A DNA stretch of 63,327 nt, counting the filler, from Lenisia limosa (taxonomy: Eukaryota > Protista > Breviatea), in the NCBI GenBank assembly GCA_001655205.1. It is 7 parts of 7 records of this genome, joined end to end, with 100 filler letters (N's around TTAATTAATTAA, not from the genome) between each part and the next. Parts side by side here need not be neighbours in the genome. Positions count along the whole stretch, not along the records: positions 1 to 13,212 come from LPNZ01007735.1; 6 more parts are not named here. One strand, given 5' to 3'. The notes below the pieces were generated by a model, which saw only the letters and a program-made list of their open reading frames with translations, did no database searches and was not told where the DNA came from. Each line of letters starts with the position of its first letter. Within the stretch, counting starts at the first letter, position 1. Shown here piece by piece: positions 2-22,255 of this stretch. Both the position numbers and the translations under genes were made by a program.

Positions 2-3000
2 CCCCCACATTCGGCCTCAATTGTAATAATCTTGCTGACGGTGCGGCAGTGGGACCGTGCCGTTATAACCATGGTGTAGTTTCCTAATATGGTAAGTTGC
101 TGTTTATAGTTCTTGAAAAAGTTGAGGATAATCAAAGAAAAAACCAGATTAGAGATTCAAGCAAATAATACCAGTAAAAATGGGGGGGGGGGGGNNNNNN
201 NNNNNNNNNNNNNNNNNNNNNNNNNNNNNNNNNNNNNNNNNNNNNNNNNNNNNNNNNNNNNNNNNNNNNNNNNNNNNNNNNNNNNNNNNNNNNNNNNNNG
301 AGAGAAAAAAACCCTGAGATAACAGAAAGTATCCAAACAGTTACAAACTAGTGAGAAGAGAAGGTGATAGGTTGAAGTGAAGCTAAACCAATCATACCAG
401 CAAGGATGGGAACGAAGGTCGCGATGTTATCATGAGCTACAAATCCGAATGTGGGAGCTTGGTTGGTCGAAACGTCTGAAGGGTAAAATACTACGGCGCT
501 TTTTGGGATTCCGATGAAATTGTTCGAATTTTCTTTATTTACATGAAAATCTGAAGAAATATTATATGAAATGTGTCAGGTAGGGATGAGTAGGGCTTCG
601 ATCCAAAAAGGACAAGCGTTATCGATAAATCGTTGACTTTATTCATTTCCCTTCCTCCCACTACCCACCTTTGTTAATAATCATTAATAAGGATTTCAGT
701 TCACCTTTAATTCCTCACACTTTCAGTATCCAGACACCTTTCTGATATTTCACCACTAACCAGCTACTGGCCTGGGCTTTGTGTTGCTTGCCAACAAAGT
801 TGATTTTGGGNNNNNNNNNNNNNNNNNNNNNNNNNNNNNNNNNNNNNNNNNNNNNNNNNNNNNNNNNNNNNNNNNNNNNNNNNNNNNNNNNNNNNNNNNN
901 NNNNNNNNNNNNNNNNNNNNNNNNNNNNNNNNNNNNNNNNNNNNNNNNNNNNNNNNNNNNNNNNNNNNNNNNNNNNNNNNNNNNNNNNNNNNNNNNNNNN
1001 NNNNNNNNNNNNNNNNNNNNNNNNNNNNNNNNNNNNNNNNNNNNNNNNNNNNNNNNNNNNNNNNNNNNNNNNNNNNNNNNNNNNNNNNNNNNNNNNNNNN
1101 NNNNNNNNNNNNNNNNNNNNNNNNNNNNNNNNNNNNNNNNNNNNNNNNNNACTTCCCTCACAATACCATTATTATAACCTCATAAAACAAAAGACCGTCA
1201 AAATATTGATATTTATCGAGGACTTATCAGGAAATTCGGTCTGTCTTGGGACCTAATGCAGTAACCCCCCCCCTCTCACATACAACTCTTTGCACACCCC
1301 TCCCCTCCTCCCCACTCGAGGGTCGAGACTAATGGAAAGATCCTCAAGAGGCACAGTGATCTCCAAATCAGCACATGGGGCTACGCGAGTAATAAGAAAT
1401 TTGTGAAATAAAAATAAATATGTATTGTATGTGTGTGGGTGTAACGATCATACTGTGTGTGTGTAAAGGAGTATTTTGTGTGGATGATAATAATCTCCAA
1501 ATCGCCACATGGGAGGAGGTAAGCGGGTAAAATAGTCGTATTGAAGTGAGAACAAGACTGTGATTTTTTCAATTAATTGAAGAAAAATACAAATAATTCA
1601 CATTCCGCAGGAGAGGGGGGGGGGGAGATAAAATGGAAAAGTTATGAACAAAAACAATGTTGATTCAATGCCTTATTGCAACCCATCCCTCCTCCCACCA
1701 TGAATTTCAATAGGGTTACTGACGTATGTTTCGCAGTCCTCGAGGAANNNNNNNNNNNNNNNNNNNNNNNNNNNNNNNNNNNNNNNNNNNNNNNNNNNNN
1801 NNNNNNNNNNNNNNNNNNNNNNNNNNNNNNNNNNNNNNNNNNNNNNNNNNNNNNNNNNNNNNNNNNNNNNNNNNAAAAGAAAAACAGCCCCACCATCGAC
1901 ATCAGGTACGAAAACGGTTCCTGCCGGTCTCAGGGCCTCCATATCAACGCTCTCGAACTTGCTGTACTGAACAGTGGTGGTGCTCACATTGTCAATGGTG
2001 GTCGTCTGAGGGAGGGTCATTATGTGCACATTGATATATAATATTTAATATATAGTATTACTATATGAGGTTGTCTAATGGGTTAGTCACACGCACCAAT
2101 ACCCAATACCCCACGCGAATAGTTGTATCTCCAATGACTGTTGTGGTGTTCCCAGTGGCCAATGATATAAAGGTCTGAATAGCGTAAAAAAGATGTAAAA
2201 ACAGCAATAATAATATTCAAAAAAAAAAAAAAANNNNNNNNNNNNNNNNNNNNNNNNNNNNNNNNNNNNNNNNNNNNNNNNNNNNNNNNNNNNAGATGTT
2301 GACAGGATAGTTAGTTGAAATTATAGTTCGTTCTGATCATAACAGTGGCCTTGTTAGCATCAAATCTCATGTCTTACTCTGGGCTATTAAAATATATCGA
2401 TGATTTATAGAGAATTCAGTCATTTTATGGATCAGAGTGAAGCTGCTTTATTGCATTGTCTAGAAAACGCTCAAGTACATACATATTGTAGATACGATAT
2501 CGGATTAAAGACAAAAAGAAAAAGGTTGTCTTATTGATGGCTTGTGCCTCTATTGACTTTTGATATCAAAAATAATAATAAAATAACACGAAAACATCAG
2601 TTCTAACTTACCTCAGTAGTGGGGGTGTAGATAGAGTTATCAGGAGCTTCAATGACAGCCCAATAATGGGTGTAGTCGTCGAAGGACTTGCCAAGGTCGA
2701 AAATGGTGTTCTGGGGGGTGAAATACTGTTTTTGAATCAATAGACAAAAGAGAAAAACAAAGACCGAGATAACAAAAAGTTCAGTTACGAACCAGTGAGA
2801 GTAGGAAGAATTGGGGAACAAGATCCTTCCCATTCTTGGCTTTTTATTTTCCCCTANNNNNNNNNNNNNNNNNNNNNNNNNNNNNNNNNNNNNNNNNNNN
2901 NNNNNNNNNNNNNNNNNNNNNNNNNNNNNNNNNNNNNNNNNNNNNNNNNNNNNNNNNNNNNNNNNNNNNNNNNNNNNNNNNNNNNNNNNNNNNNNNNNNN

Positions 3001-6000
3001 NNNNNNNNNNNNNNNNNNNNNNNNNNNNNNNNNNNNNNNNNNNNAAAAACTCTGTTGGCTAGCAGCAAAGGAGGGTTGGAAACTACAAAAACAACAAAGC
3101 TTGGGGTTGTTATTCAATTTAACATATTATTTCTTCAAAATAATATTTATCGAGACATTCGGTCGGAAACCTCCTAACAAGCCCCGCTGACCTGGAGTGC
3201 GGGCGAATATTGATCGGGAACTGCTTGCACGTTACAATGATGACCTAAGGGAGAGGTCAAAACGAAAGAAAATGGTATGAAACAAAAAAGCCCAAAATAA
3301 ACTCTGTTGGAAANNNNNNNNNNNNNNNNNNNNNNNNNNNNNNNNNNNNNNNNNNNNNNNNNNNNNNNNNNNNNNNNNNNNNNNNNNNNNNNNNNNNNNN
3401 NNNNNNNNNNNNNAGAACCGAATAATAGCATTTGGGAAGTACACATGTGTGCTAAAACTCTGATGAAGATAAATCAATTGAGAAACTCTTTATCACATTT
3501 ATCACATTTATCAATACATAGTATATGATAATTTATATCTATTATACATATAGCTAGACAAAATTTTTTAAACCAAATACAAACCGCTGTTGCTGAGGCT
3601 TCAGTGCCGCAAGACAGGGTGTACGTCCACTTCAAAGTGTAGTTACCAGGTACGGCGGTATCGAACGTGTAAAGTTCGTCAAAAGCTGAAAAGGGATAAA
3701 ATTAAATATGAAGACGAGTTTTAAAAAAAGGTTGATGTGGACGGCCTTGGTCCCAGGTAAAAAATTTCCATAATATTAACAATAATAGCTATATCATATA
3801 ATATGTATTTCTCATCAACTATTATATGATATACCCCTCCCCCCGCGAACTATTGCTGAAAGTTGCTCCAAGAGGCCCTTCATAACTACTGGGTAAATGT
3901 GCGTGAACGTGCAGCGTTAAAAGGTTGGCTTGAAAAATGTAGATAAAATATTGAGCGTTAACGAGAATTGATCGAGGAATTCAGTCTTTTTTTTTGATCT
4001 AAAGTGGAAAATATATGAAACAAAAAAAAAAAAAAGAAGCCCGAATCAACAATGTTGNNNNNNNNNNNNNNNNNNNNNNNNNNNNNNNNNNNNNNNNNNN
4101 NNNNGAGATTAGAGGCAAGTTACACGAGTAAGACTGCCAGTTCCATAGCATCAAGTTTCTTTTGTTAAAGGAAATTGAAACAATTATTATGCACCAAGTG
4201 ATAGTTCTCTATCGCAAATGAAAGTAGCCAAAAGATAAAACCCACCTGTTTTTTTATTCTATTTTTTTTTTATATTTAGCCCCTCTCCCCGCGCCTCGTA
4301 CGAGAAAACTCTCCCTGCGACTTGGGAAGTGTCGTTTAGACNNNNNNNNNNNNNNNNNNNNNNNNNNNNNNNNNNNNNNNNNNNNNNNNNNNNNNNNNNN
4401 NNNNNNNNNNNNNNNNNNNNNNNNNNNNNNNNNNNNNNNNNNNNNNNNNNNNNNNAGAGGGTATTGATCTAATATATTTATATGTATGTCACCCATCGGA
4501 CAAACAAAGCCCCCAAGGCAGCAAACAACCAATACAGCGGCTCACATTCAACACTAAGAGTGAGGGGCGATCCAATGGTCATTTCGAAGGACGTTTTCGC
4601 CGTCTTATTTACAACGGTTTGCTCGTCAACAAAGACGGCAAAGCCCTCGGGGCACGTACGTATGTAGGTCACTTGGACCAACTCAGCTGTCTGGCCACAA
4701 GCGGTGGTGACTATAGCCTGGGGGAGGGGAATTGGAAATTTGAAACAAAATTTGAAGGATTGCTTTTTGATTGAATCCCTAACAATTATGAGTCCCAAAT
4801 TTCTCTCCCATCATCCATGAGAAATACAGTTTTTTTTCATCCTATTTTTATTCCCCAATTTCTGAGCCGCAAGCCCCCCGCACCTTGAAAACGTGGGTTC
4901 CGGGTCCCACAGTAACACTGGCCGTCTCAATGGTGGTCATGAAGATTGGAACAGGGCTAAGGAGTTACCCATGGGCGAATGAGATGGGAAGTAAACACAC
5001 AACCCCCCCCCCCCCNNNNNNNNNNNNNNNNNNNNNNNNNNNNNNNNNNNNNNNNNNNNNNNNNNNNNNNNNNNNNNNNNNNNNNNNNNNNNNNNNNNNN
5101 NNNNNNNNNNNNNNNNNNNNNNNNNNNGGCAGAGTCCCAATAGCAGCAAGCTGGAGGAATGAGGGGGGTGGCTGGGATAGAATTGGGGATTGTGTGTGTG
5201 TGTGTGTGTGGGATAGGAAATTGTTCTAAAAGCCCAAAATCATCTCTGTTGGCAAGAAGCACATGATCTGTAGCAACACATCTCACTCCGTTCCCGGATC
5301 TTTATGATCCTGTTCCAATAGAGACTTTACTACAAAAAAAAACAAAAAACAGAAGCTCCGACCTGTTCTTCGGGGATAGTGAGCTTGAAGGTGTTATCGA
5401 ATGTGGCAGCTGCTTCGATGACTTGAATCTAATACAGGTTAATGTGACATGTAGAACTGAAGGTTACTGTAACAAGTAGGGCTTCACTTAGGTTCGAAAA
5501 AAGACTGAATTTCTCGATATATCCTCAACAATTAACGAATTTTACAGGGATTTGTCGAACCGAAGTGAAGCCCTTGTAACAAGTAGAAATAAAGGTAGAT
5601 GTCATTAGATCTGGCACATATTAATACCTGACAGTTTCAAGGTGTTTCTTCTAACATGAAAGTGACACATAATTCCTTGAAAAACTGAAAAAGAGAGAGA
5701 ATTACACTACGGCGCATGACTTGGGTCTCCCTTGTATTATTTGGGAATCCCATAAATAACTTCGGATTTCCATAAAATTACATGGGATTCCCATTTAAAA
5801 TAAGGGAATTCCCAATTTTTTCACAAGAATCCCAAGTCGATGCGCCTTAGTGTAATTGCACAAGCGTACCATTGGAAGGGCGGCGGGAAGGGCATAAGTA
5901 GTGGTGTTACAGTACGACGGAATTTCGAGTGAAACTGTTACTACTTCACAGTCCTTGGTTGCAACGAGTGTTACCTGGGGGGTAAGAATGGGATATTAAT

Positions 6001-9000
6001 GAAACAATAACAACAAAAAAAAAGAAGCTTAAAATTAAATCAGCTGGCTACCCCCCCCCCCCTCACAACCGTGGTCACCATCACAGTAGTCACCACAATT
6101 GTCATCATCACCACCACCACCATCATCATCACCATCAACACAACAACAACAACAACATCACCANNNNNNNNNNNNNNNNNNNNNNNNNNNNNNNNNNNNN
6201 NNNNNNNNNNNNNNNNNNCACCCCCTCCCCCCACAGTGTAGTTCATTTGGTGTTCGACAATGACGGCGTTCGAAGTGGCAGAAGTTCCGAATGGCTTGGT
6301 TTCTTCCTCGGTAGACTAGAGAGGGTTATTAGAGTTTATGTTCACTTGTGGTTATTATGTTTATAGTCTTTGTGGATTGTTTTTTAAATAAATCAATTCA
6401 AACAAACAAAAAAAAAAACAGAGCTAATAGACTTCCCTCNNNNNNNNNNNNNNNNNNNNNNNNNNNNNNNNNNNNNNNNNNNNNNNNNNNNNNNNNNNNN
6501 NNNNNNNNNNNNNNNNNNNNNNNNNNNNNNNNNNNNNNNNNNNNNNNNNNNNNNNNNNNNNNNCTAACTAAAAACCACCACCACAATATTTGATCTTTGA
6601 ATATAAAAAGAAAAATAATAAAAAAATAATAAAAAAATAATAAAAAAATAATAAAACAATAAAAATAACACAAAGCCAATACCCCACAGAAATGGTCCAG
6701 TAATAAGAATCAGCGTTCAGGGTTTCGGAAACAGTGACGGTGGGAGTGGGGTACGAGCCGCCGTTGTGCTCGATGGGGAGTGCAGAGGAGGCAACGAGAT
6801 GGAAGTTGGGCATGGTCTGGTGAGGAGTAAAATTGGAAAATTATGAAACAAAAAAACCCAAATCAACTCTGGTGGGGTGGTGGTTAGGGTCACATTTATC
6901 GAGGATTTAAAGGTTTTTTTTATCTTTTTTTGGAACCGAAGTGAAACCCCACACCACCACCGTCTCGAAGCCCTACCTGTGCGTCAGTGGGACAAATGGT
7001 TGTCACAACGGCCTTGGCGGTTTCACCTCTTCCACACCTGCGAACTGCAGTGACCGCCAAAATGTACGAGCCTAGGGAGTGAGAAGGAATGGTGTGTGTC
7101 TGATTGTACAAAGAGAGAGAGAGAGAGAGTGTGTGTGTGTGATTGGGTGATTGATATATGTATTTGTGTGTGTGGTTGTGTTCTATATGTGTGTATGAGA
7201 GACGTAAAGAGAGTCGTGCTACTGTGTTCTCTCTCTCACTCTCTCTCAAAAAGGGATTCAGTATTGAAGGTGTATGTCATTATGTCTCTCTATGTGGTGT
7301 GTGTGATTCTGTCTCCCTTGAGCCTTGTATCTCTTTCTCTGTGTATCACACACCCAAAACCACGCATACAGGGAACATTAGGCCTGAACCCAAAACCACA
7401 GCATACCAGGAGCATCAGGCGTGAACCGAGTAGTGTAGTTGTTGGAGAGGGCAATGAAGCTCAAGTCGTCGTCACTCAGTACTGAGTCTCGAGGAACGGA
7501 TTCGAATGTCCATTCACTGAAGGGGTAAAAAATGTATGTGTTGAAATTGGAAAATGTATAAGTAGGGCTTCCCTACGGTCCGAAAGAGACCGTTTAAATA
7601 TCGATATTTATCGAGGATTTCTCGAGAAATTCGGTCAAATTGGGACCGTAGGAGAGCCCTTTGTATTAAACATTGGCTGGGGTGAATCGGAAAATGTATG
7701 AAACAACAGCCCCCCCCCCACTAGTGGATATTAGCATCGTCATCCGAGATGCCGGCGTCAAGGGTAACCTCGCTATATCCAGTGGTGTATCTAAAATATA
7801 AATAATGTAGCTAATGCAAGAACTGTTTCCAAAAATGCGAATCTCCCCACGTGGAGGTGGTAATAAATATAATGAAAAGAAAACAAGTAATAATAAATAA
7901 TAGTAATAATAAATTGAAATAGAAAGTAAAGAGATGAGAAATAAAACAAGGTTGACTTGAGCCGAAGCCATCCACACCATCACGCAGAAATAGGATCAAC
8001 AACAACACCACCACTACCACCAACAACAAAAATAACAACAACATTAATGATAATCAAAAACAACAACAACAACAAAAAAAAAANNNNNNNNNNNNNNNNN
8101 NNNNNNNNNNNNNNNNNNNNNNNNNNNNNNNNNNNNNNNNNNNNNNNNNNNNNNNNNNNNNNNNNNNNNNNNNNNNNNNNNNNNNNNNNNNNNNNNNNNN
8201 NNNNNNNNNNNNNNNNNNNNNNNNNNNNNNNNNNNNNNNNNNNNNNNNNNNNNNNNNNNNNNNNNNNNNNNNNNNNNNNNNAAGATGATCATCCTTTTGC
8301 CTGAGCTCACCGAGGCAGTTTTCAGGGGTAGCGTCAACGACGTCCCCTCCAGATTCCATATTAGCGTCCTGGTAGAAAATGACCTTCGGCGCAGAGTTGA
8401 GGTCCAAAATGGCCACAGCACAGACCAGGACTGCGGGATTATAGTTAATATCCAGGAATATTGTAACATAGAAAGGGGTCACAATAGGCATTATCATATC
8501 TATTAAATAAGGAGATGGGTTTGATAAAATTGGACAATTTTTGAAACAAAANNNNNNNNNNNNNNNNNNNNNNNNNNNNNNNNNNNNNNNNNNNNNNNNN
8601 NNNNNNNNNNNNNNNNNNNNNNNNNNNNNNNNNNNNNNNNNNNNNNNNNNNNNNNNNNNNNNNNNNNNNNCTTGAGAAAGAGGGGGGGGGGTAGAGCAAT
8701 ACAAGGCCCAAAGAGGCCCAAAGAGGTAGAACAATAAAACTTGGCCTTACCGTCATCGTAGCTGGTTCGGGTTTCGGTGTACACTTCTTCAGTGGTGGTG
8801 TTCACAACGGTTTGCTGTTGGAGTGTGAGGTGTGTCATGTTTTAAGAAGTTTGCTGTGTGAGGTGAATGGCGTTTTAAGCGGTTTGTGCGAGGTTTAATA
8901 ATAGGGCTTCACTTCAGATCGAAAATATCGATAGTTTTCGAGCATTTATCGAGAAATACACTCTTTTTTCGAACTGAAGGGAATCCGTAATCCCAAGTCA

Positions 9001-12000
9001 CAGAAAATATCTCCTCCACCCAGCCTGAGACACCTAATTATTCCTCCAGCCTTTGACACCTAAATATTAGGGCTTCACCTTAGGTTCCAAAAGACGGATA
9101 AAATATCGATATTTATCGAGGATTTATCGAGAATTCAGTCTCTTTTGGAACCGAAAGTGAAGCTCTATTAAATATTCCCCCAACCTTAGATATAGAGCAA
9201 TGGGAAATAAAAATAAGGATGTATCTGGCCGAANNNNNNNNNNNNNNNNNNNNNNNNNNNNNNNNNNNNNNNNNNNNNNNNNNNNNNNNNNNNNNNNNNN
9301 NNNNNNNNNNNNNNNNNTATTCCTCCAACCTTGGATACCCGGGTAACGTCGTCCCAGTTTTTGGAGCCGAAAACATGCTGCAGAGGGACGGTGGAGGTTG
9401 AAGAAACTCTGATAATCGTCAGAGCGGATATACATTATATACCAGATTATAAATATGATAATACATGATATATCGATATATACTATGAATATATCATATA
9501 TCACACCGTCCATAATTCTGTGATTTTCCGATATCTGTGATTTTTTGAAAAATGTAAGTTTTTTGGTTTTTAAGGACTGTTGTTACCTAAATAGTGTCTT
9601 TGCTTCTTGTTTAAATTGAGAAAAATTACTAATGGAAGAAAAACAGACAAAACTCAGACAAAATATTGGGAACATGGGGAGAAACAGAAGAAAAACACAC
9701 TGTTTTCATGTTTTGTTAAAAATACCTCCGCTTGGAATCGAACCCAGCACCTCAGGAGTCCAAGACACGATTTTGAGCTTCCACTGAGAAGAACTGAAAC
9801 CCGGGTACCCGGTTGCCTTTTCACCGTTTATTTTGAAACCCCCTTTTCAAAAGTTAGTGTAATTTTTACTTAAATAAGGTTTGAACATCAAAAAAATAAA
9901 ATTGACTGAAAATTCCTTTTCTGAGGTTGGTTTGGGGTAAAATTGAAATTATGTTCAGTTATTAATCAAATTTCTAGAATGATAAACTTGGATCAGCATG
10001 TTGGACGCTATACAACTTGGAAAGATATTCCTGAGCCTGTGAAAGTTGCTTATTTAACTGCGCAGTGTGAAAAATATGAGGCAGCCTTAGCAATTGCTAA
10101 AAGTACCAAGGTATGAGTCAATGTTGGAGTTTATTATTCAGACAAAATGCTTCCTTGCAAATTTCACTCGCTATATTCCTAATATTCAACATTTTGAAAA
10201 CGTCACAGATGAGCTGTCATTTCCAGATAGTCACCGGGCATTTGATAGATATAAAGAAGGTTTGAATGCATGACATCATCTCATATTTTGGAAAGCCTGT
10301 TTACAGTATTATCCCTGGACGGAAAACTGATAGAAGAAAATCCGTCAAACTATCTCAACAATCAAAGACATTCACTCAGTAAGCCTTTTTTTTGTCTTTG
10401 TTGATTCTTTAGAAAGGCTTACATATTGATCACAAAACTGTTTCTCAGCTTGCAAAGCAGCATGGAGTTTCATGGAAACGATAGAAGAAGGTGGAAACAA
10501 AGCAAGGCGCAACCCTCGGTCCAGAGACGATTGATGCTACTGGTGGAGCCACTGAGGTTTGAAAAAGGCAGTTGGAAAGAAAGGCTGGTGGAGGTTTGTT
10601 TATTATCGCATATTTAACATCCAAGAAAGAGGAAGAGCAAGACNNNNNNNNNNGGAGGGAAAAGAGGTCGCAGTACTCGTGGAAGATAATGTCATTTTTA
10701 TCGGTTATGTTGTATTTTTGGCAAAAATATATGTCTTTTTGTCTTTATTTTTTGCAAATAGTGTGTTTTCAACAAGAAAATTCGCATACTCTTCAAAATG
10801 TATCAAAAAAAGTTGCATCAGTACTTTAAAGCAAAAAGAGAGTGAATAAACAGGCAAAAGAAAGACTAAAATATCCAAAAAACGAATTATTTAAAAAATC
10901 ACAGATATATGGACGGTGTGATATATATATATTACTATACATGTGTATAATATATCATTTGTATAATAGAACATACAATAGTATATACAGCGACCAGGAT
11001 AAGTCTTGACCGATTTTCCATTGAGAAATTAGAAGCAAATTGGTCAAGAGTTATCCCAGTCACTGTACATATCCTGGATCGGATGCCCAGGCCACTCACT
11101 CGTCAGTGGAGACGTCTGTAATGGTGTTCCGGACCACATCGTCTTCAACGGTCTTGAAAATCTTCCACTAAAAAGTAAGTCAAATAAAAGAGGCAGCACA
11201 GAGATAAAAAAAAAAAAAAGGNNNNNNNNNNNNNNNNNNNNNNNNNNNNNNNNNNNNNNNNNNNNNNNNNNNNNNNNNNNNNNNNNNNNNNNNNNNNNNN
11301 NNNNNNNNNNNNNNNNNNNNNNNNNNNNNNNNNNNNNNNNNNNNNNNNNNNNNNNNNNAACAAAATAATAAAAAAAACCACAAACAAAAATTGCCTACCT
11401 TAATCATGGAGGGAGTTGAGGAGTGAAGAACGGCCTTCTTCCCAACGCCTGCCTCCAAAACCCAGTCAAATGACACCTGAAATGTGAGTTCCATGCAATC
11501 ATCATCATTATCAATATAGAAGTCTGTACAGAATGTGCATTATTGGTATTTTTCTTCCTTAATTATTGATACATTTACATTCTTTTTCAAAAAAAATATA
11601 GAAGTCTCAAGAATCCCCCCGCAGAGAACACTCCACCCACGGAAGACTCAATATCACCGAATGTGAAAACAAGGTCCTGGGCGANNNNNNNNNNNNNNNN
11701 NNNNNNNNNNNNNNNNNNNNNNNNNNNNNNNNNNNNNNNNNNNNNNNNNNNNNNNNNNNNNNNNNNNNNNNNNNNNNNNNNNNNNNNNNNNNNNNNNNNN
11801 NNNNNNNNNNNNNNNNNNNNNNNNNNNNNNNNNNNNNNNNNNNNNNNNNNNNNNNNNNNNNNNNNNNNNNNNNNNNNNNNNNTAAAAATTAGGGCTCCGT
11901 GCAAATAATTGAAAAAGTATTTCAAAAATCTGAAGTTAGACATATTGTCACAAGTGCATATTCTATTACTCGTTCAAAAAAATAAAAAAAAAATTTATCG

Positions 12001-15992: not shown

Positions 15993-17735
15993 CTAGCCTC
16001 GCATGACGACAGAAGGGTGGAACGATATAAGGAAGGTTGTTCTCCACGGTGTGTCTTCATTCACAATATGAGCAGACACTTTAGCAGGCTACACAATATT
16101 AGTTATCAACAACAATCTAAGGGGACAATATCACCCTGTAATAAAAGTTGTTCGAGTTTCCCTATTAATCCACCACAGATATCAATATTCTCCCCAGTCA
16201 GGCAGCACTTACCATTCCAGCTGCCTCCAGACAAGCTTCCACGATACCTTCGGGATTAAACGGGTTTAAACAGGGCAGTGAAAATGAGCTACAATAACAC
16301 AAAACAATATTCTGTATTATACTGACAGTATACGTAGAGATGCGAATTAAAAATAAATGCTATTTGGCCGAGGTTGTCCACATCATCATGCTTATAAGAG
16401 ATATTGGGTTATTGTATAACACTTATTCACCCAAGTAGAAGTGAATTACCAAAAAAGAGAGTAGCTGTCACCTACCAGCAGTGAATGAAGCAGGATTAGC
16501 ACCAATGTCTCTTGGCGATTTCGGGCTGAACCCAGCCCACTCAAGAGGTGCAGAATCCACGATCATGACTGAGGAGTGAGATCAAAATGAACAACATGAG
16601 TTTTCTAATTTAACCACGAAAAAAGCCGAACTAAACTTGCAAGAAACGACAAACTATTTGATAGGAGAAGCTATACGAAGGAAGTAATAGAACAAAGGTG
16701 AGCTCCCATACAAAGGCTTCCAACGTGGATTATCAAGAACCACAGCGACCCTCAGTATACATTCGTTATCTTTGTCTGTGCTCTTTTCAAGTTGGTCCGC
16801 CTGGCGCCCGAAAATGGACTTCCATATTGTCGATGTCATCAACATCAGAAACTGGACATTGGTTAATTTTGCCAGAGGGTGTGCTTACATCCCCAAGATA
16901 GATATTGGTTTGTCATATTACATAAAACAATTCATCTGGTGATACACGCTGTGCTGCAAACACATGATTGGTATCAATATCCCTGATAAACATGACCGTC
17001 TGCCTGATTCTTGATTTCTCATTTAGAACAAGACTAATATTGCCCAGAAAACTATTAAATAAGAAATAGTGGTGTTGAAACGTGGGTTCATATTCCCAGA
17101 ACCATGGCATCACTAAAGCAGGTTTGAAACCAAACAACGAAATATACTTTCAATTTTTCATAAGTATCAGAAAAATGTGATATTACAATTACAAAAGTGA
17201 GGGAAAGAGGCTAGCATACCTGAACCGGTTTTGTCTCCCTTCTTGGCATTTTCTCTCTCCAACAGGTAACGTGATAGAGACGAACTCCAACATCATAGCC
17301 TAATTTGTGCAACCTGCAGTTGTTATGGGGTTAGCCCTAAGTTCAATAATAGTTGATACAACAGAAGAAGCGAAACAAAATGCATAAAAGGGGTAACAAC
17401 ACGAGATATCAACTCCTTTCCAAACCTCATACCTTTCTTCGACTTCATTAACCCTCTGTGACTTCCTCATTGAGTAGCGATAGGCCTCAGCAAAGAGGAA
17501 AGAAAATGCCGACTTCGACACCTGAAGCGTCACTGGGGAGGCAGAAGCGGACTCTCAATCCTCAATACACACAGACACTCCTTTCAGCAACACAATCCTT
17601 CAAAACGGGGAAAGCAGTTTAAGCCGGTGAAAGGACCATCATTTGAACAAGCAAACCACATACTACCTCTCCTTTTGACTTTGGGATCTGGAGATCAAGG
17701 TTCTCCGTCATTTTATTGCGTTGTCGACCGCTCAT
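15993..17735 (-). CDS. TRAPPC5: TRAPP complex subunit 5 (Trs31)
   Basis: Complete 7-exon model: ..GEVSKSAFSFLFAEAYRY..ERLHKLGYDVGVRLY..REKMPRRETK..TIWKSIFGRQADQLEKS..NPASFTAGIVEACLEAAGMPAKVSAH..TTFLISF*. This matches the TRAPPC5 family motifs. Confidence 0.9.
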
Positions 17736-18012
17736 TATGAGCCTTGATCAGGGGAAGAAGAGGGGTTGACTGGGTAGGGATCAATAAAACTTGTTTTATT
17801 ATTGTAAATGGATAATATGGGCAACAGGAGACGACCAGAAGAATGCACTACCGCTGGGGAGGAAACGGAAATGCTACAATTGTGCGTTGATCGACCTTTT
17901 GATGTTGATTATTTTAATATCTCTCTAAATATATAATAATTAAGGGTTAGTTTTGAGTTTTTGAGAGTTTTTTTTTCAAAAAACGTTTAAAATGACGGCT
18001 CGGATGGTATAT

Positions 18013-18018
18013 CACGTG
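18013..18018. promoter_or_regulatory. E-box (TCACGTGA palindrome) in a probable divergent promoter
   Basis: CACGTG lies between the TRAPPC5 start (minus strand) and plus-strand exons leading toward SELO. Confidence 0.3.
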
Positions 18019-18214
18019 ATTTTTTGGCTTTTTACGGTTCTCCCAAAGCTTTCCTTGAAGGTTTTACCATATTAGAGGATTAATAATTTTATACACAAGT
18101 ACAATATAGCAGCGCTTAGTAAGGTTAAAAGGCACAGTCTTGAGCAACATATCATTCAACTCACATCGTATTCGTCATCCAAATCATCATCTTTCTCAAG
18201 TGGGATTGTTAGCT

Positions 18215-18782
18215 AAGCCGTTTACTTTGGCAATCAATATGAAAGCATGATTGCACACCGTGTTTTAAACTTAGTTCCAAGTCAGTGTAAATTCCGTATT
18301 TTAGGTAAGCATTGCTGTCGCCATGTTGAATGATGGTGGAAGGATGACTGACACACATTCTTGACGATCTAGGCCAGCTTCGAACCATGGCATCACAGTC
18401 TTCATGGGTCAAGGTTGGTCTTTTAAATGTTGATGGAGTTTCTCACTTTACTGTTCGGGAAAGGGATTATTAATTAAATTCGATGCTCATAGGCTTTACT
18501 CATTTTGCTTCAGATATCAATTTGGGGCTTAGACATACAGGCAATCACCACATACTTGTAGTATTATATGTGATATACTACAAGTATGTGGATGTTCTTC
18601 TTTCCAAGAGTAACAGACTGCATATTTGTATTTTCACATTAATTTGTTCAGTCGTTCGCCGACCGTCTTGAGACCCCAGCTCTTGATATGCTGGAAATCG
18701 ACAGATCTTATAACGCTGAACAACGCACTGTCGAAAGTTGGTCAAGTGCTTTTTTTCAGAAAACGATTCTTCAATACTCATA
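18215..18782 (+). CDS. Putative exons upstream of SELO (N-terminal extension or separate gene)
   Basis: Phase-consistent exons AVYFGNQYESMIAHRVLNLVPSQCKFRIL|GQLRTMASQSSWVK|...SFADRLETPALDMLEIDRSYN. No family recognised. Confidence 0.35.
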
Positions 18783-18983
18783 GTTCATTAATATTACAAA
18801 ATATATTGGTAGTTGACATACTGATATTCTAATCAATTGCCCCTGCAACTTCGGAATCGAGTGTTTTGTTGTAATTTTGTACAGATGGTGTGGGTATCCA
18901 TGGTACAGCATTGTGAGAGAAAATGACTGTTGACCTTTTTTTGTTTACGGTCTTCACAAAGTACTTCTGTTAATATTTTTTAG

Positions 18984-22255
<3,272 letters not shown>

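Follow-up and report, generated by a model that had tools for sequence, protein, structure and literature searches.

Maize Ds from Ac, dSpm from En/Spm and Drosophila KP from P are the classical deletion derivatives of DNA transposons. We describe an element at positions 9501-10921 of a 63,327-nucleotide (nt) stretch of the genome of the breviate Lenisia limosa (GenBank assembly GCA_001655205.1; the whole stretch that was analysed is called the window below) that has a good deal in common with them. Both its ends have been kept while the interior was lost at a junction with short microhomology, it would depend on a full-length partner, and its leftover 5′ exons can mimic a small gene. There is no difference of kind; a truncated product would here end in exon 3 or shortly past it, and nothing points to a repressor role for it. 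The locus very probably holds a non-autonomous member, with its interior deleted, of a multi-copy family of cut-and-paste elements whose transposase is probably pogo-like, inserted in antisense orientation at a (TA)n site of an intron. An initial annotation had already proposed a non-autonomous DNA transposon with terminal inverted repeats (TIRs) in an intron, and that much is borne out. The same annotation suggested that the element had captured a gene in the Pack fashion, or carried an accessory gene. Like Pack-MULE and Pack-CACTA elements it has TIRs around coding sequence with exons and introns, but the coding sequence belongs to the element's own transposase gene and not to a captured host gene.

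The pogo superfamily includes Tigger, pogoR, Fot/Fot-like, Passer, Lemi and Mover (PMC7386202). Its elements are 1.2-5.2 kb long, encode proteins of 300-977 amino acids (aa) with a DD29-56D arrangement of catalytic aspartates, and make target-site duplications (TSDs) of TA, TAA or TAAA; in Mover the arrangement is DD36D, and no DNA-binding domain is detectable by hmmscan (PMC7386202). The L. limosa family resembles pogo as a cut-and-paste TIR element of suitable size (3.3 kb between the two ends of a degraded copy in locus L004, and 3.7 kb or more for full-length members) with a 794-aa transposase inside the pogo range. Its TIRs of about 50 bp correspond to those of pogo ‘type 2’ (40-60 bp), and its target is TA-based. 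Like Mover, it has three conserved aspartates (DDD, numbered D1 to D3), with 36 residues between the last two, and no DNA-binding domain found by hmmscan; TSDs of 4 bp (TAAA) exist in Fot-like elements (PMC7386202). The family differs from pogo in that its protein goes unseen by the DDE_1 hidden Markov model, in its D1-D2 spacing of 139 residues, in an extra conserved N-terminal region of ~85 aa, a C-terminal tail of ~300 aa and seven micro-introns, and in ends that read TATA/TCACACC rather than TA/CAG... The Sola elements are the other group to be compared. They are described as having a DDD transposase, 4-bp TSDs, a length of 2-9 kb and TIRs of 11-1124 bp (PMC10741241), and their RNase-H-like domains have been reported to be without Pfam similarity (PMC5751038). 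Set side by side by description, the family shares with Sola the DDD transposase, a possible 4-bp TSD, variable TIRs, a length within 2-9 kb and the lack of a Pfam model; its language-model leads and local motifs favour DDE_1 instead.

The window has a G+C content of ~32% and is eukaryotic. It was compared with contigs from a DNA-like run of the same organism (X1), whose summed depth along the window is ~25 on unique flanks, with contigs from a polyA-RNA library (X2), and with nine longer or related loci (L001-L009), which are contigs of one public ENA metagenome assembly. A single-copy level of 21-26 for these loci was taken from the coverage of two contigs bearing host genes. Proteins and open reading frames (ORFs) matched in searches carry P numbers. 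The components of the element and its flanks are as follows.

9497-9500: left flank TATA, a candidate TSD of TA or TATA (ATAT if the element begins at CAC)
9501-9550, plus strand: left TIR, made up of TCACACCGTCCAT and then a tandem pair of 17-nt motifs (9517-9533 and 9534-9550)
9723-9816, minus strand: weak tRNA-like segment in the 5′ subterminal region, with B-box-like GGTTCGATTCC at 9734-9744
9979-10110, plus strand: exon 1 of the transposase gene, which counts 44 codons with the start codon as the first; undamaged, and identical to L001
10142-10259, plus strand: exon 2, 39 codons in the family frame, with an in-frame 15-nt deletion relative to L001
10291-10378, plus strand: exon 3 in its family version (..PGRKTDKKKIRQTISKIKDIHS in L001); in the window the acceptor is lost and the frame shifted
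10449-10472, plus strand: start of exon 4, its first 8 codons LAKQHGVS being helix-turn-helix-like; cut by the deletion
10472/10473: internal deletion junction with 4-nt microhomology TTCA
10473-10643, plus strand: remnant of the C-terminal tail of the last exon (KKVETKQGATLGPETIDATGG..), holding two in-frame stops, and an acidic tail of low complexity; the L002 counterpart is ..KKVDTKQGATLGPETIDATGGAEEVRKRQL
10644-10653: assembly gap, 10 N against ~148 nt in a family RNA contig
10654-10885, plus strand: 3′ subterminal non-coding region, subfamily-specific in being unmatched in other subfamilies; depth 155-213, with low RNA-contig cover
10886-10921, minus strand: right TIR with a single 17-nt motif, one copy having been lost relative to the family
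10922-10925: right flank TATA, which pairs with the left one

The window contains exactly two occurrences of the 13-mer CACACCGTCCATA, at 9502-9514 on the plus strand and 10908-10920 on the minus strand; with two mismatches or fewer allowed, 0.2 matches would be expected by chance. The inverted arms extend to 32 nt with a complementarity of 94%. The TIRs of CAC...GTG type noticed in the initial annotation are thus real, and the ATAT flanks and TA-rich site reported there are present on both sides. A second pair of arms (9531-9553 and 10886-10908) reflects the 17-nt motif, which is tandemly doubled at the left end. The doubling had been taken for an internal duplication of that end, but two tandem motifs per end are the norm for the family (L002, L004 and L008), and it is the right end that has changed, by losing one copy. 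The paired motifs are probably the sites at which the transposase binds. Eight ends from five copies could be compared, both ends of the window copy, L004 and L008 and the right end only of L002 and L009, and all eight read ..TATA followed by TCACACCGT(C/T)CAT and the 17-nt motifs. Three copies are complete, with both TIRs: that of the window, L004 6205-9493 and L008 1295-3407. A TSD of 2 nt (TA) or 4 nt (TATA) fits all three, and lengths of 3, 5 and 8 fail in them, which excludes CACTA proper (3 bp), Transib (5 bp) and hAT (8 bp). TSD lengths of the pogo, Sola and Chapaev types stay compatible with the flanks.

The element is multi-copy. The summed depth of X1 contigs is 130-360 over 9479-10892, and X1 contigs of depth 105-122 (records 3 and 4) differ from the window at 2-3 positions only. 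L001, at a coverage of 120, is ~98% identical to the window. Other copies and longer versions, for which the initial annotation had called for a search, exist: besides the multi-copy depth there are the complete copies in L004 and L008 and a long gene in L005.

The comparison with these longer copies identifies the coding sequence. In every longer member (L001, L002, L005 and L006) exons 1 and 2 open a long gene, in the same position and orientation as in the window, and downstream of them lie collinear exons with conserved D..D..D motifs. Since exons 1 and 2 head the family's own gene and are followed by these collinear exons, this is not a gene-capturing element, and the proposal of a captured or accessory gene falls. 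Window positions 9559-10472 correspond to L001 1-930 (~98% identity, 20 differences). L001, which is 1,464 nt long, then continues into sequence that is homologous to the interior of L002 and absent from the window. Past 10472 the window resumes at about position 2880 of L002, with 10485-10549 equivalent to L002 2893-2957, in what is the C-terminal tail of the last long ORF of L002 (..KKVDTKQGATLGPETIDATGG..), and the right TIR corresponds to L002 3771-3822. With L002 as reference, about 2 kb is missing between exon 4 and the C-terminal tail. The 4-nt microhomology at the junction is typical of an internal deletion generated by repair.

The sequence 3′ to the junction is itself probably longer than the assembly suggests. 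Letters 1-119 of a 333-nt polyA-library contig (X2 record 13) match 10525-10643 and letters 268-332 match 10654-10718, with 148 letters between them in place of the 10 N of the window. At 96-97% identity to the window the contig could come from a sister copy, and the gap is probably underestimated by about 138 nt. It falls in the acidic low-complexity stretch, outside the termini and outside the ORF drawn in the initial annotation.

That ORF was a four-exon antisense frame of 135 aa, described as an intact gene. Only its first two exons survive comparison with the family. Exons 1 and 2, separated by intron 1 (10111-10141), are in the family frame. Exon 3 reads ..(N)IIPGRKTDKKKIRQTISKIKDIHS in L001 and ..NLTPGRKSNDQKRRKTVSKIKEMHS in L002, and because exons 2 and 3 are fused in L005 its frame is fixed. 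Compared with L001 and with every X1 contig over this part, the window copy has T in place of A at 10289, turning the family acceptor AG at 10289-10290 into TG; G in place of A at 10306, creating the AG that was used for the annotated exon 3 (10307-10378); the loss of one A after 10331, with a resulting frameshift; C in place of A at 10359; and the in-frame 15-nt deletion in exon 2. Neither the annotated exon 3 (LSLDGKLIEENPSNYLNNQRHSL) nor exon 4 (CKAAWSF..) is in a family frame, whether that of the 5′ or the 3′ part. Of the 135 residues of the drawn ORF 83 are genuine and the remainder come from accidental frames, so with the acceptor lost, a base missing and ~2 kb deleted the gene is not intact. 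As judged from these lesions, the window copy cannot encode the transposase. The annotation had also noted that the ORF was not recognizable as a transposase by itself, and this stands, Pfam having matched nothing on the exons. A stop-free spliced ORF between TIRs can evidently mimic cargo when it consists of two real transposase exons and two accidental frames.

What did the undamaged gene look like? L005 carries at 703-3375 an uninterrupted model of 794 aa in 8 exons, with seven GT-AG introns of 34, 38, 35, 32, 32, 81 and 36 nt; strong GT..YAG micro-introns are found at 838-871, 1103-1140, 1282-1316, 1501-1532, 2204-2235 and 2475-2510. The window, L001 and L002 subfamilies have an intron between exons 2 and 3 that L005 lacks, and the family gene has 8 to 9 exons. 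The protein begins with the conserved ~85-aa N-terminal region (exons 1 and 2; motif LDQHVGRY..W.DIP), followed by a GRK-rich linker, helix-turn-helix-like exons, a predicted catalytic region with D305, D445 and D482 and the long tail of ~300 aa. The aspartates of L005 are spaced D(139)D(36)D, each preceded by a hydrophobic strand-like stretch. D305 lies in RVLTGDETSF (ILFSDETAF in L002, L003 and L009), D445 in IILFVDGHNMH (MTDGHN/SI in P0010 and P0012) and D482 in EPSQTSHMLQCND (EPSLTSQHLQ..SND in L002, with K at +8). D1 (DETAF/DETSF) and D2 (DGHxxH) are conserved in three subfamilies, and the third aspartate, in ‘..P.xTS..LQ.ND’, in L002 and L005. We infer that the three form the catalytic triad. 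A different second catalytic aspartate, that of ‘EFDDPG’, was ruled out by the conserved ‘DGHNxH’ of L005 and P0010.

The exons are under strong purifying selection between subfamilies. The ratio of nonsynonymous to synonymous divergence (dN/dS) is 0.12-0.27 where it can be computed (about 0.12-0.26 for exon 1), with dN of 0.05-0.69 and saturated synonymous sites.

The L005 contig starts inside the left TIR and has a coverage of 275, ~11 times the single-copy level, so that activity of this subfamily may persist. The polyA library includes RNA contigs that stem from family members (X2 records 12 and 13). Record 12 (390 nt) carries a homologue of exon 1, at window 9991-10032, that reads MIHLDQH.. 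and is closest to the L006 type. The 276 nt upstream differ from the genomic sequence that immediately precedes the ATG in both the window and L006; at this place an acceptor-like tttctag stands in the window. The mismatch suggests that expressed copies have a spliced 5′ leader exon.

How widely is the family distributed? A phmmer search with exon 1 (44 aa) of 1.84 billion representative sequences returned four short ORFs with 51-100% identity (P0001-P0003 and P0006). All share the Met start and run for ~44 codons up to a GTN codon, the conserved donor, and the contigs of all four come from one ENA metagenome assembly. The Trp of P0001 at the TGA of the window reflects the genetic code used by the gene caller and not a difference in sequence. 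Two further matches, P0004 and P0005, are internally repetitive proteins of bacterial type and were discarded as spurious. When 5.8 billion proteins were searched with a profile of the catalytic exon and with the C-terminal ORF, and metagenome contigs of JGI were scanned, relatives turned up in that same ENA assembly or not at all, within the word and length limits of these searches.

Two of the loci contain family copies in other settings. L009 2745-2997 is a 94%-identical piece of the leader of the window subfamily (window 9674-9921), and ~0.8 kb downstream of it follows a copy belonging to another subfamily, an arrangement that suggests nested or clustered insertions. In L007 (59-4746 and 11223-12336) a degraded copy of L005 type lies between minus-strand ORFs with weak matches to Ig domains of HYDIN/ASH/CFAP65 type, and it may be within a large ciliary gene.

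The history of the window copy can be pictured as follows. Full-length members have TIRs of ~50 bp (TCACACCGTCCAT plus two 17-nt motifs) around one gene of 8 to 9 exons, whose micro-introns mostly measure 32-38 nt. The window copy retains the 5′ 970 nt of such a member, which take in the TIR, the leader, exons 1-3 and the start of exon 4 (8 codons), and its last ~450 nt together with a probable ~138 nt hidden in the N gap. The intervening ~2 kb could have been lost at the 4-nt microhomology through abortive gap repair after excision. The copy would then be mobile only if a full-length relative supplied the enzyme in trans, and that enzyme would need to accept a right end with a single binding motif.

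The transposase itself is probably, in our judgement, a very divergent pogo-like DDD enzyme of the IS630-Tc1-mariner group that duplicates TA or TATA. The 36 residues between D445 and D482 lie inside the DD29-56D range. Language-model searches with the D1-D2 exon and, independently, with the first 110 residues after D3 both led to clusters of DDE_1 (PF03184), in the second case with agreement among 89 of 100 named matches; at scores of 0.84-0.85 we treat these as leads only.

A number of observations weigh against our interpretation, whether of the structure or of the placement. The assembly is fragmented, with 19 N runs across 13.2 kb of window sequence. Among the X1 contig pieces listed, some stop at 10472 and others begin at 10483, with none spanning the junction, and the private letters at 10289, 10306, 10331 and 10359 occur in no X1 contig. 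The joined flanks of the three complete copies, searched against all the fetched DNA for empty sites, gave nothing across the joint, which leaves 2 and 4 nt as candidate lengths of the TSD. If the ends are read as CAC..GTG the adjoining dinucleotide is AT, not TA. Pfam hmmscan with every exon ORF, including the 223-aa D1-D2 exon, found no DDE_1 at E ≤ 10, in a search whose power is lowered by the introns that split the catalytic domain, and no Pfam or NCBIfam model matches any exon ORF. AlphaFold gave the D1-D2 exon a pLDDT (predicted local distance difference test) of 35 and 30 with alignments of 4 and 8 sequences, so that the RNase-H fold stays a prediction and the superfamily a putative one. 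The motifs of the family fit the DDE_1 consensus (DEt.f; D....H; P...T(s)h..Q..D.......K). A D1-D2 spacing of 139 is long for pogo.

Other searches with the exon ORFs were also blank. Those of the PDB by sequence and profile gave nothing meaningful, a language-model search with exon 1 returned no family, and the Pfam results contained no CENP-B_N, HTH_Tnp_Tc5, HTH_psq or BrkDBD match on the N-terminal exons. The ORF across the deletion junction, looked up as an exact sequence, had no entry.

The gaps, the contig breaks and the private letters are what might be seen if the 5′ and 3′ parts of full-length copies had been mis-joined during assembly of a repeat-rich region. Yet the junction lies in continuous sequence, with the nearest N 170 nt away, the shared sequence there of about 4 nt is too short for a k-mer mis-join, and there is no dip in depth in the 10388-10488 bin; breaks in the contigs are moreover expected if deleted and full-length forms coexist. 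We consider such an artefact highly improbable. A captured cellular gene of Pack type, or an accessory gene of some autonomous family, in either case with CMC (CACTA/Mirage/Chapaev) or Transib affinity, is barely credible. It can appeal to ends that read CAC...GTG if the preceding T is left uncounted, to an ORF that matches nothing in Pfam and to the 135-aa stop-free spliced frame that can be drawn. The suggestion of CMC or Transib rested on those ends only, and CACACC termini with AT or ATAT flanks do fit CMC ends. The 5-bp and 3-bp TSDs of Transib and CACTA proper nevertheless fail in all three complete copies, Pfam on the exon ORFs gave no RAG1-like, En/Spm-type or Transposase_21/24 match, and the motifs of the family are DET/DGH/ND rather than the DGF.PF of CACTA; neither CMC nor Transib is supported. 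As for the cargo, the single 794-aa frame of L005 and the D..D..D gene that exons 1 and 2 head in every longer member leave a deletion derivative between the TIRs, with the rest of the drawn ORF out of frame.

An internal deletion of the same structure could also have arisen in a family belonging to the Sola superfamily. Three conserved aspartates, TATA at all eight ends, a 4-bp duplication allowed by the three complete copies, and the absence of a Pfam match speak for Sola, as do the dimensions given above. Against it, the language-model search reached DDE_1 clusters from two regions of the protein independently, and the local motifs DET.F, DGHxxH and P..TS..LQ..D (the last followed in L002 by K at +8) conform to the DDE_1 consensus, including the 36-residue spacing; we think membership of Sola unlikely. 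A superfamily of some other kind, or a new one, is likewise doubtful. A bolder version, to which we give little weight, would make the family a deeply divergent, undescribed clade that is still active, either new and pogo-related with a 4-bp TATA TSD or outside the named superfamilies, in which the B-box-like motif of the leader is functional. Its activity would be argued from the intact gene at about 11-fold coverage, the near-identical copies and the RNA contigs.

The element itself is ordinary, and what is unusual is the divergence of the family transposase: purifying selection acts on it and at least one contig carries it intact, yet it is unseen by Pfam, NCBIfam and PDB searches. If the placement is confirmed, pogo-like (or Sola-like) enzymes and their target-site variants would span a wider range of sequences than is known. 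The locus also documents that such elements insert within the introns of a genome saturated with MITEs (miniature transposable elements with inverted repeats).

The tRNA-like segment reported in the initial annotation stands in part. Neither ARAGORN at default settings nor the Rfam tRNA model called a tRNA at 9723-9816, and ARAGORN at an 80% threshold drew a distorted cloverleaf there on the minus strand. The B-box-like motif within it is conserved in two subfamilies: GGTTCGA(T/G)TCC is found on the minus strand at window 9734-9744, L001 175-185, L002 98-108 and L009 2806-2816, and the strict form GGTTCGAnnCC has four occurrences in 73.6 kb of window and loci, all at the same leader position and on the same strand. 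In L002 it lies about 240 nt upstream of the start codon, in a leader that is ~65% identical around it. It may be an old piece derived from a tRNA or a functional motif.

The element lies antisense within a predicted host intron of 1.69 kb. The host gene is on the minus strand, with the following exons.

11684-11641, minus strand: first of four host exons, spliced to 11476-11399 in an RNA contig
11399-11476, minus strand: host exon whose splice to 11684-11641 is carried by the polyA-RNA contig
11100-11167, minus strand: host exon 5′ of the intron (..WKIFKTVEDDVVRNTITDVSTD-), acceptor tttttag, donor gtgagt, outside RNA cover
9318-9408, minus strand: host exon 3′ of the intron (EVSSTSTVPLQHVFGSKNWDDVTRVSKVGGI) that continues into an N gap

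These four successive exons join as one open frame of 93 aa with canonical AG/GT borders, and the GT-AG sites 11100/11099 and 9409/9408 join in phase, so that an intron of 1,691 nt (11099-9409) is plausible. The junction 11641/11476 is present in a polyA-RNA contig (X2 record 14), and of the polyA contigs on the window none covers either exon flanking the element. Splicing of the host exons across the element, as initially proposed, thus has the in-phase sites and the open frame in its favour, and the splice itself is predicted from them. No Pfam domain was found on the host exons. The neighbouring host-gene introns are 164 and 1,691 nt long, as against 31-38 nt for the transposase micro-introns.

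Two further repeats lie close by. Within the same intron, 70 nt from the element, is a 70-nt near-perfect hairpin at 10992-11061 (GACCAGGATAAGTCTTGACC...GGTCAAGAGTTATCCCAGTC) with a summed depth of 16,000-21,000 against ~25 for unique sequence. It is a very abundant MITE-like palindrome, and it has weak, sub-threshold matches to miRNA families. At 8896-8995 and 9063-9172 are two copies of a MITE-like inverted-repeat element with GGGCTTCACTTCGG..TCGAAAA ends, whose summed depth in the DNA-like run reaches 1.5e5, a value that suggests copies in the thousands. The contigs show many joints at which its copies are rearranged, and it is also found in L004, L007 and L008.

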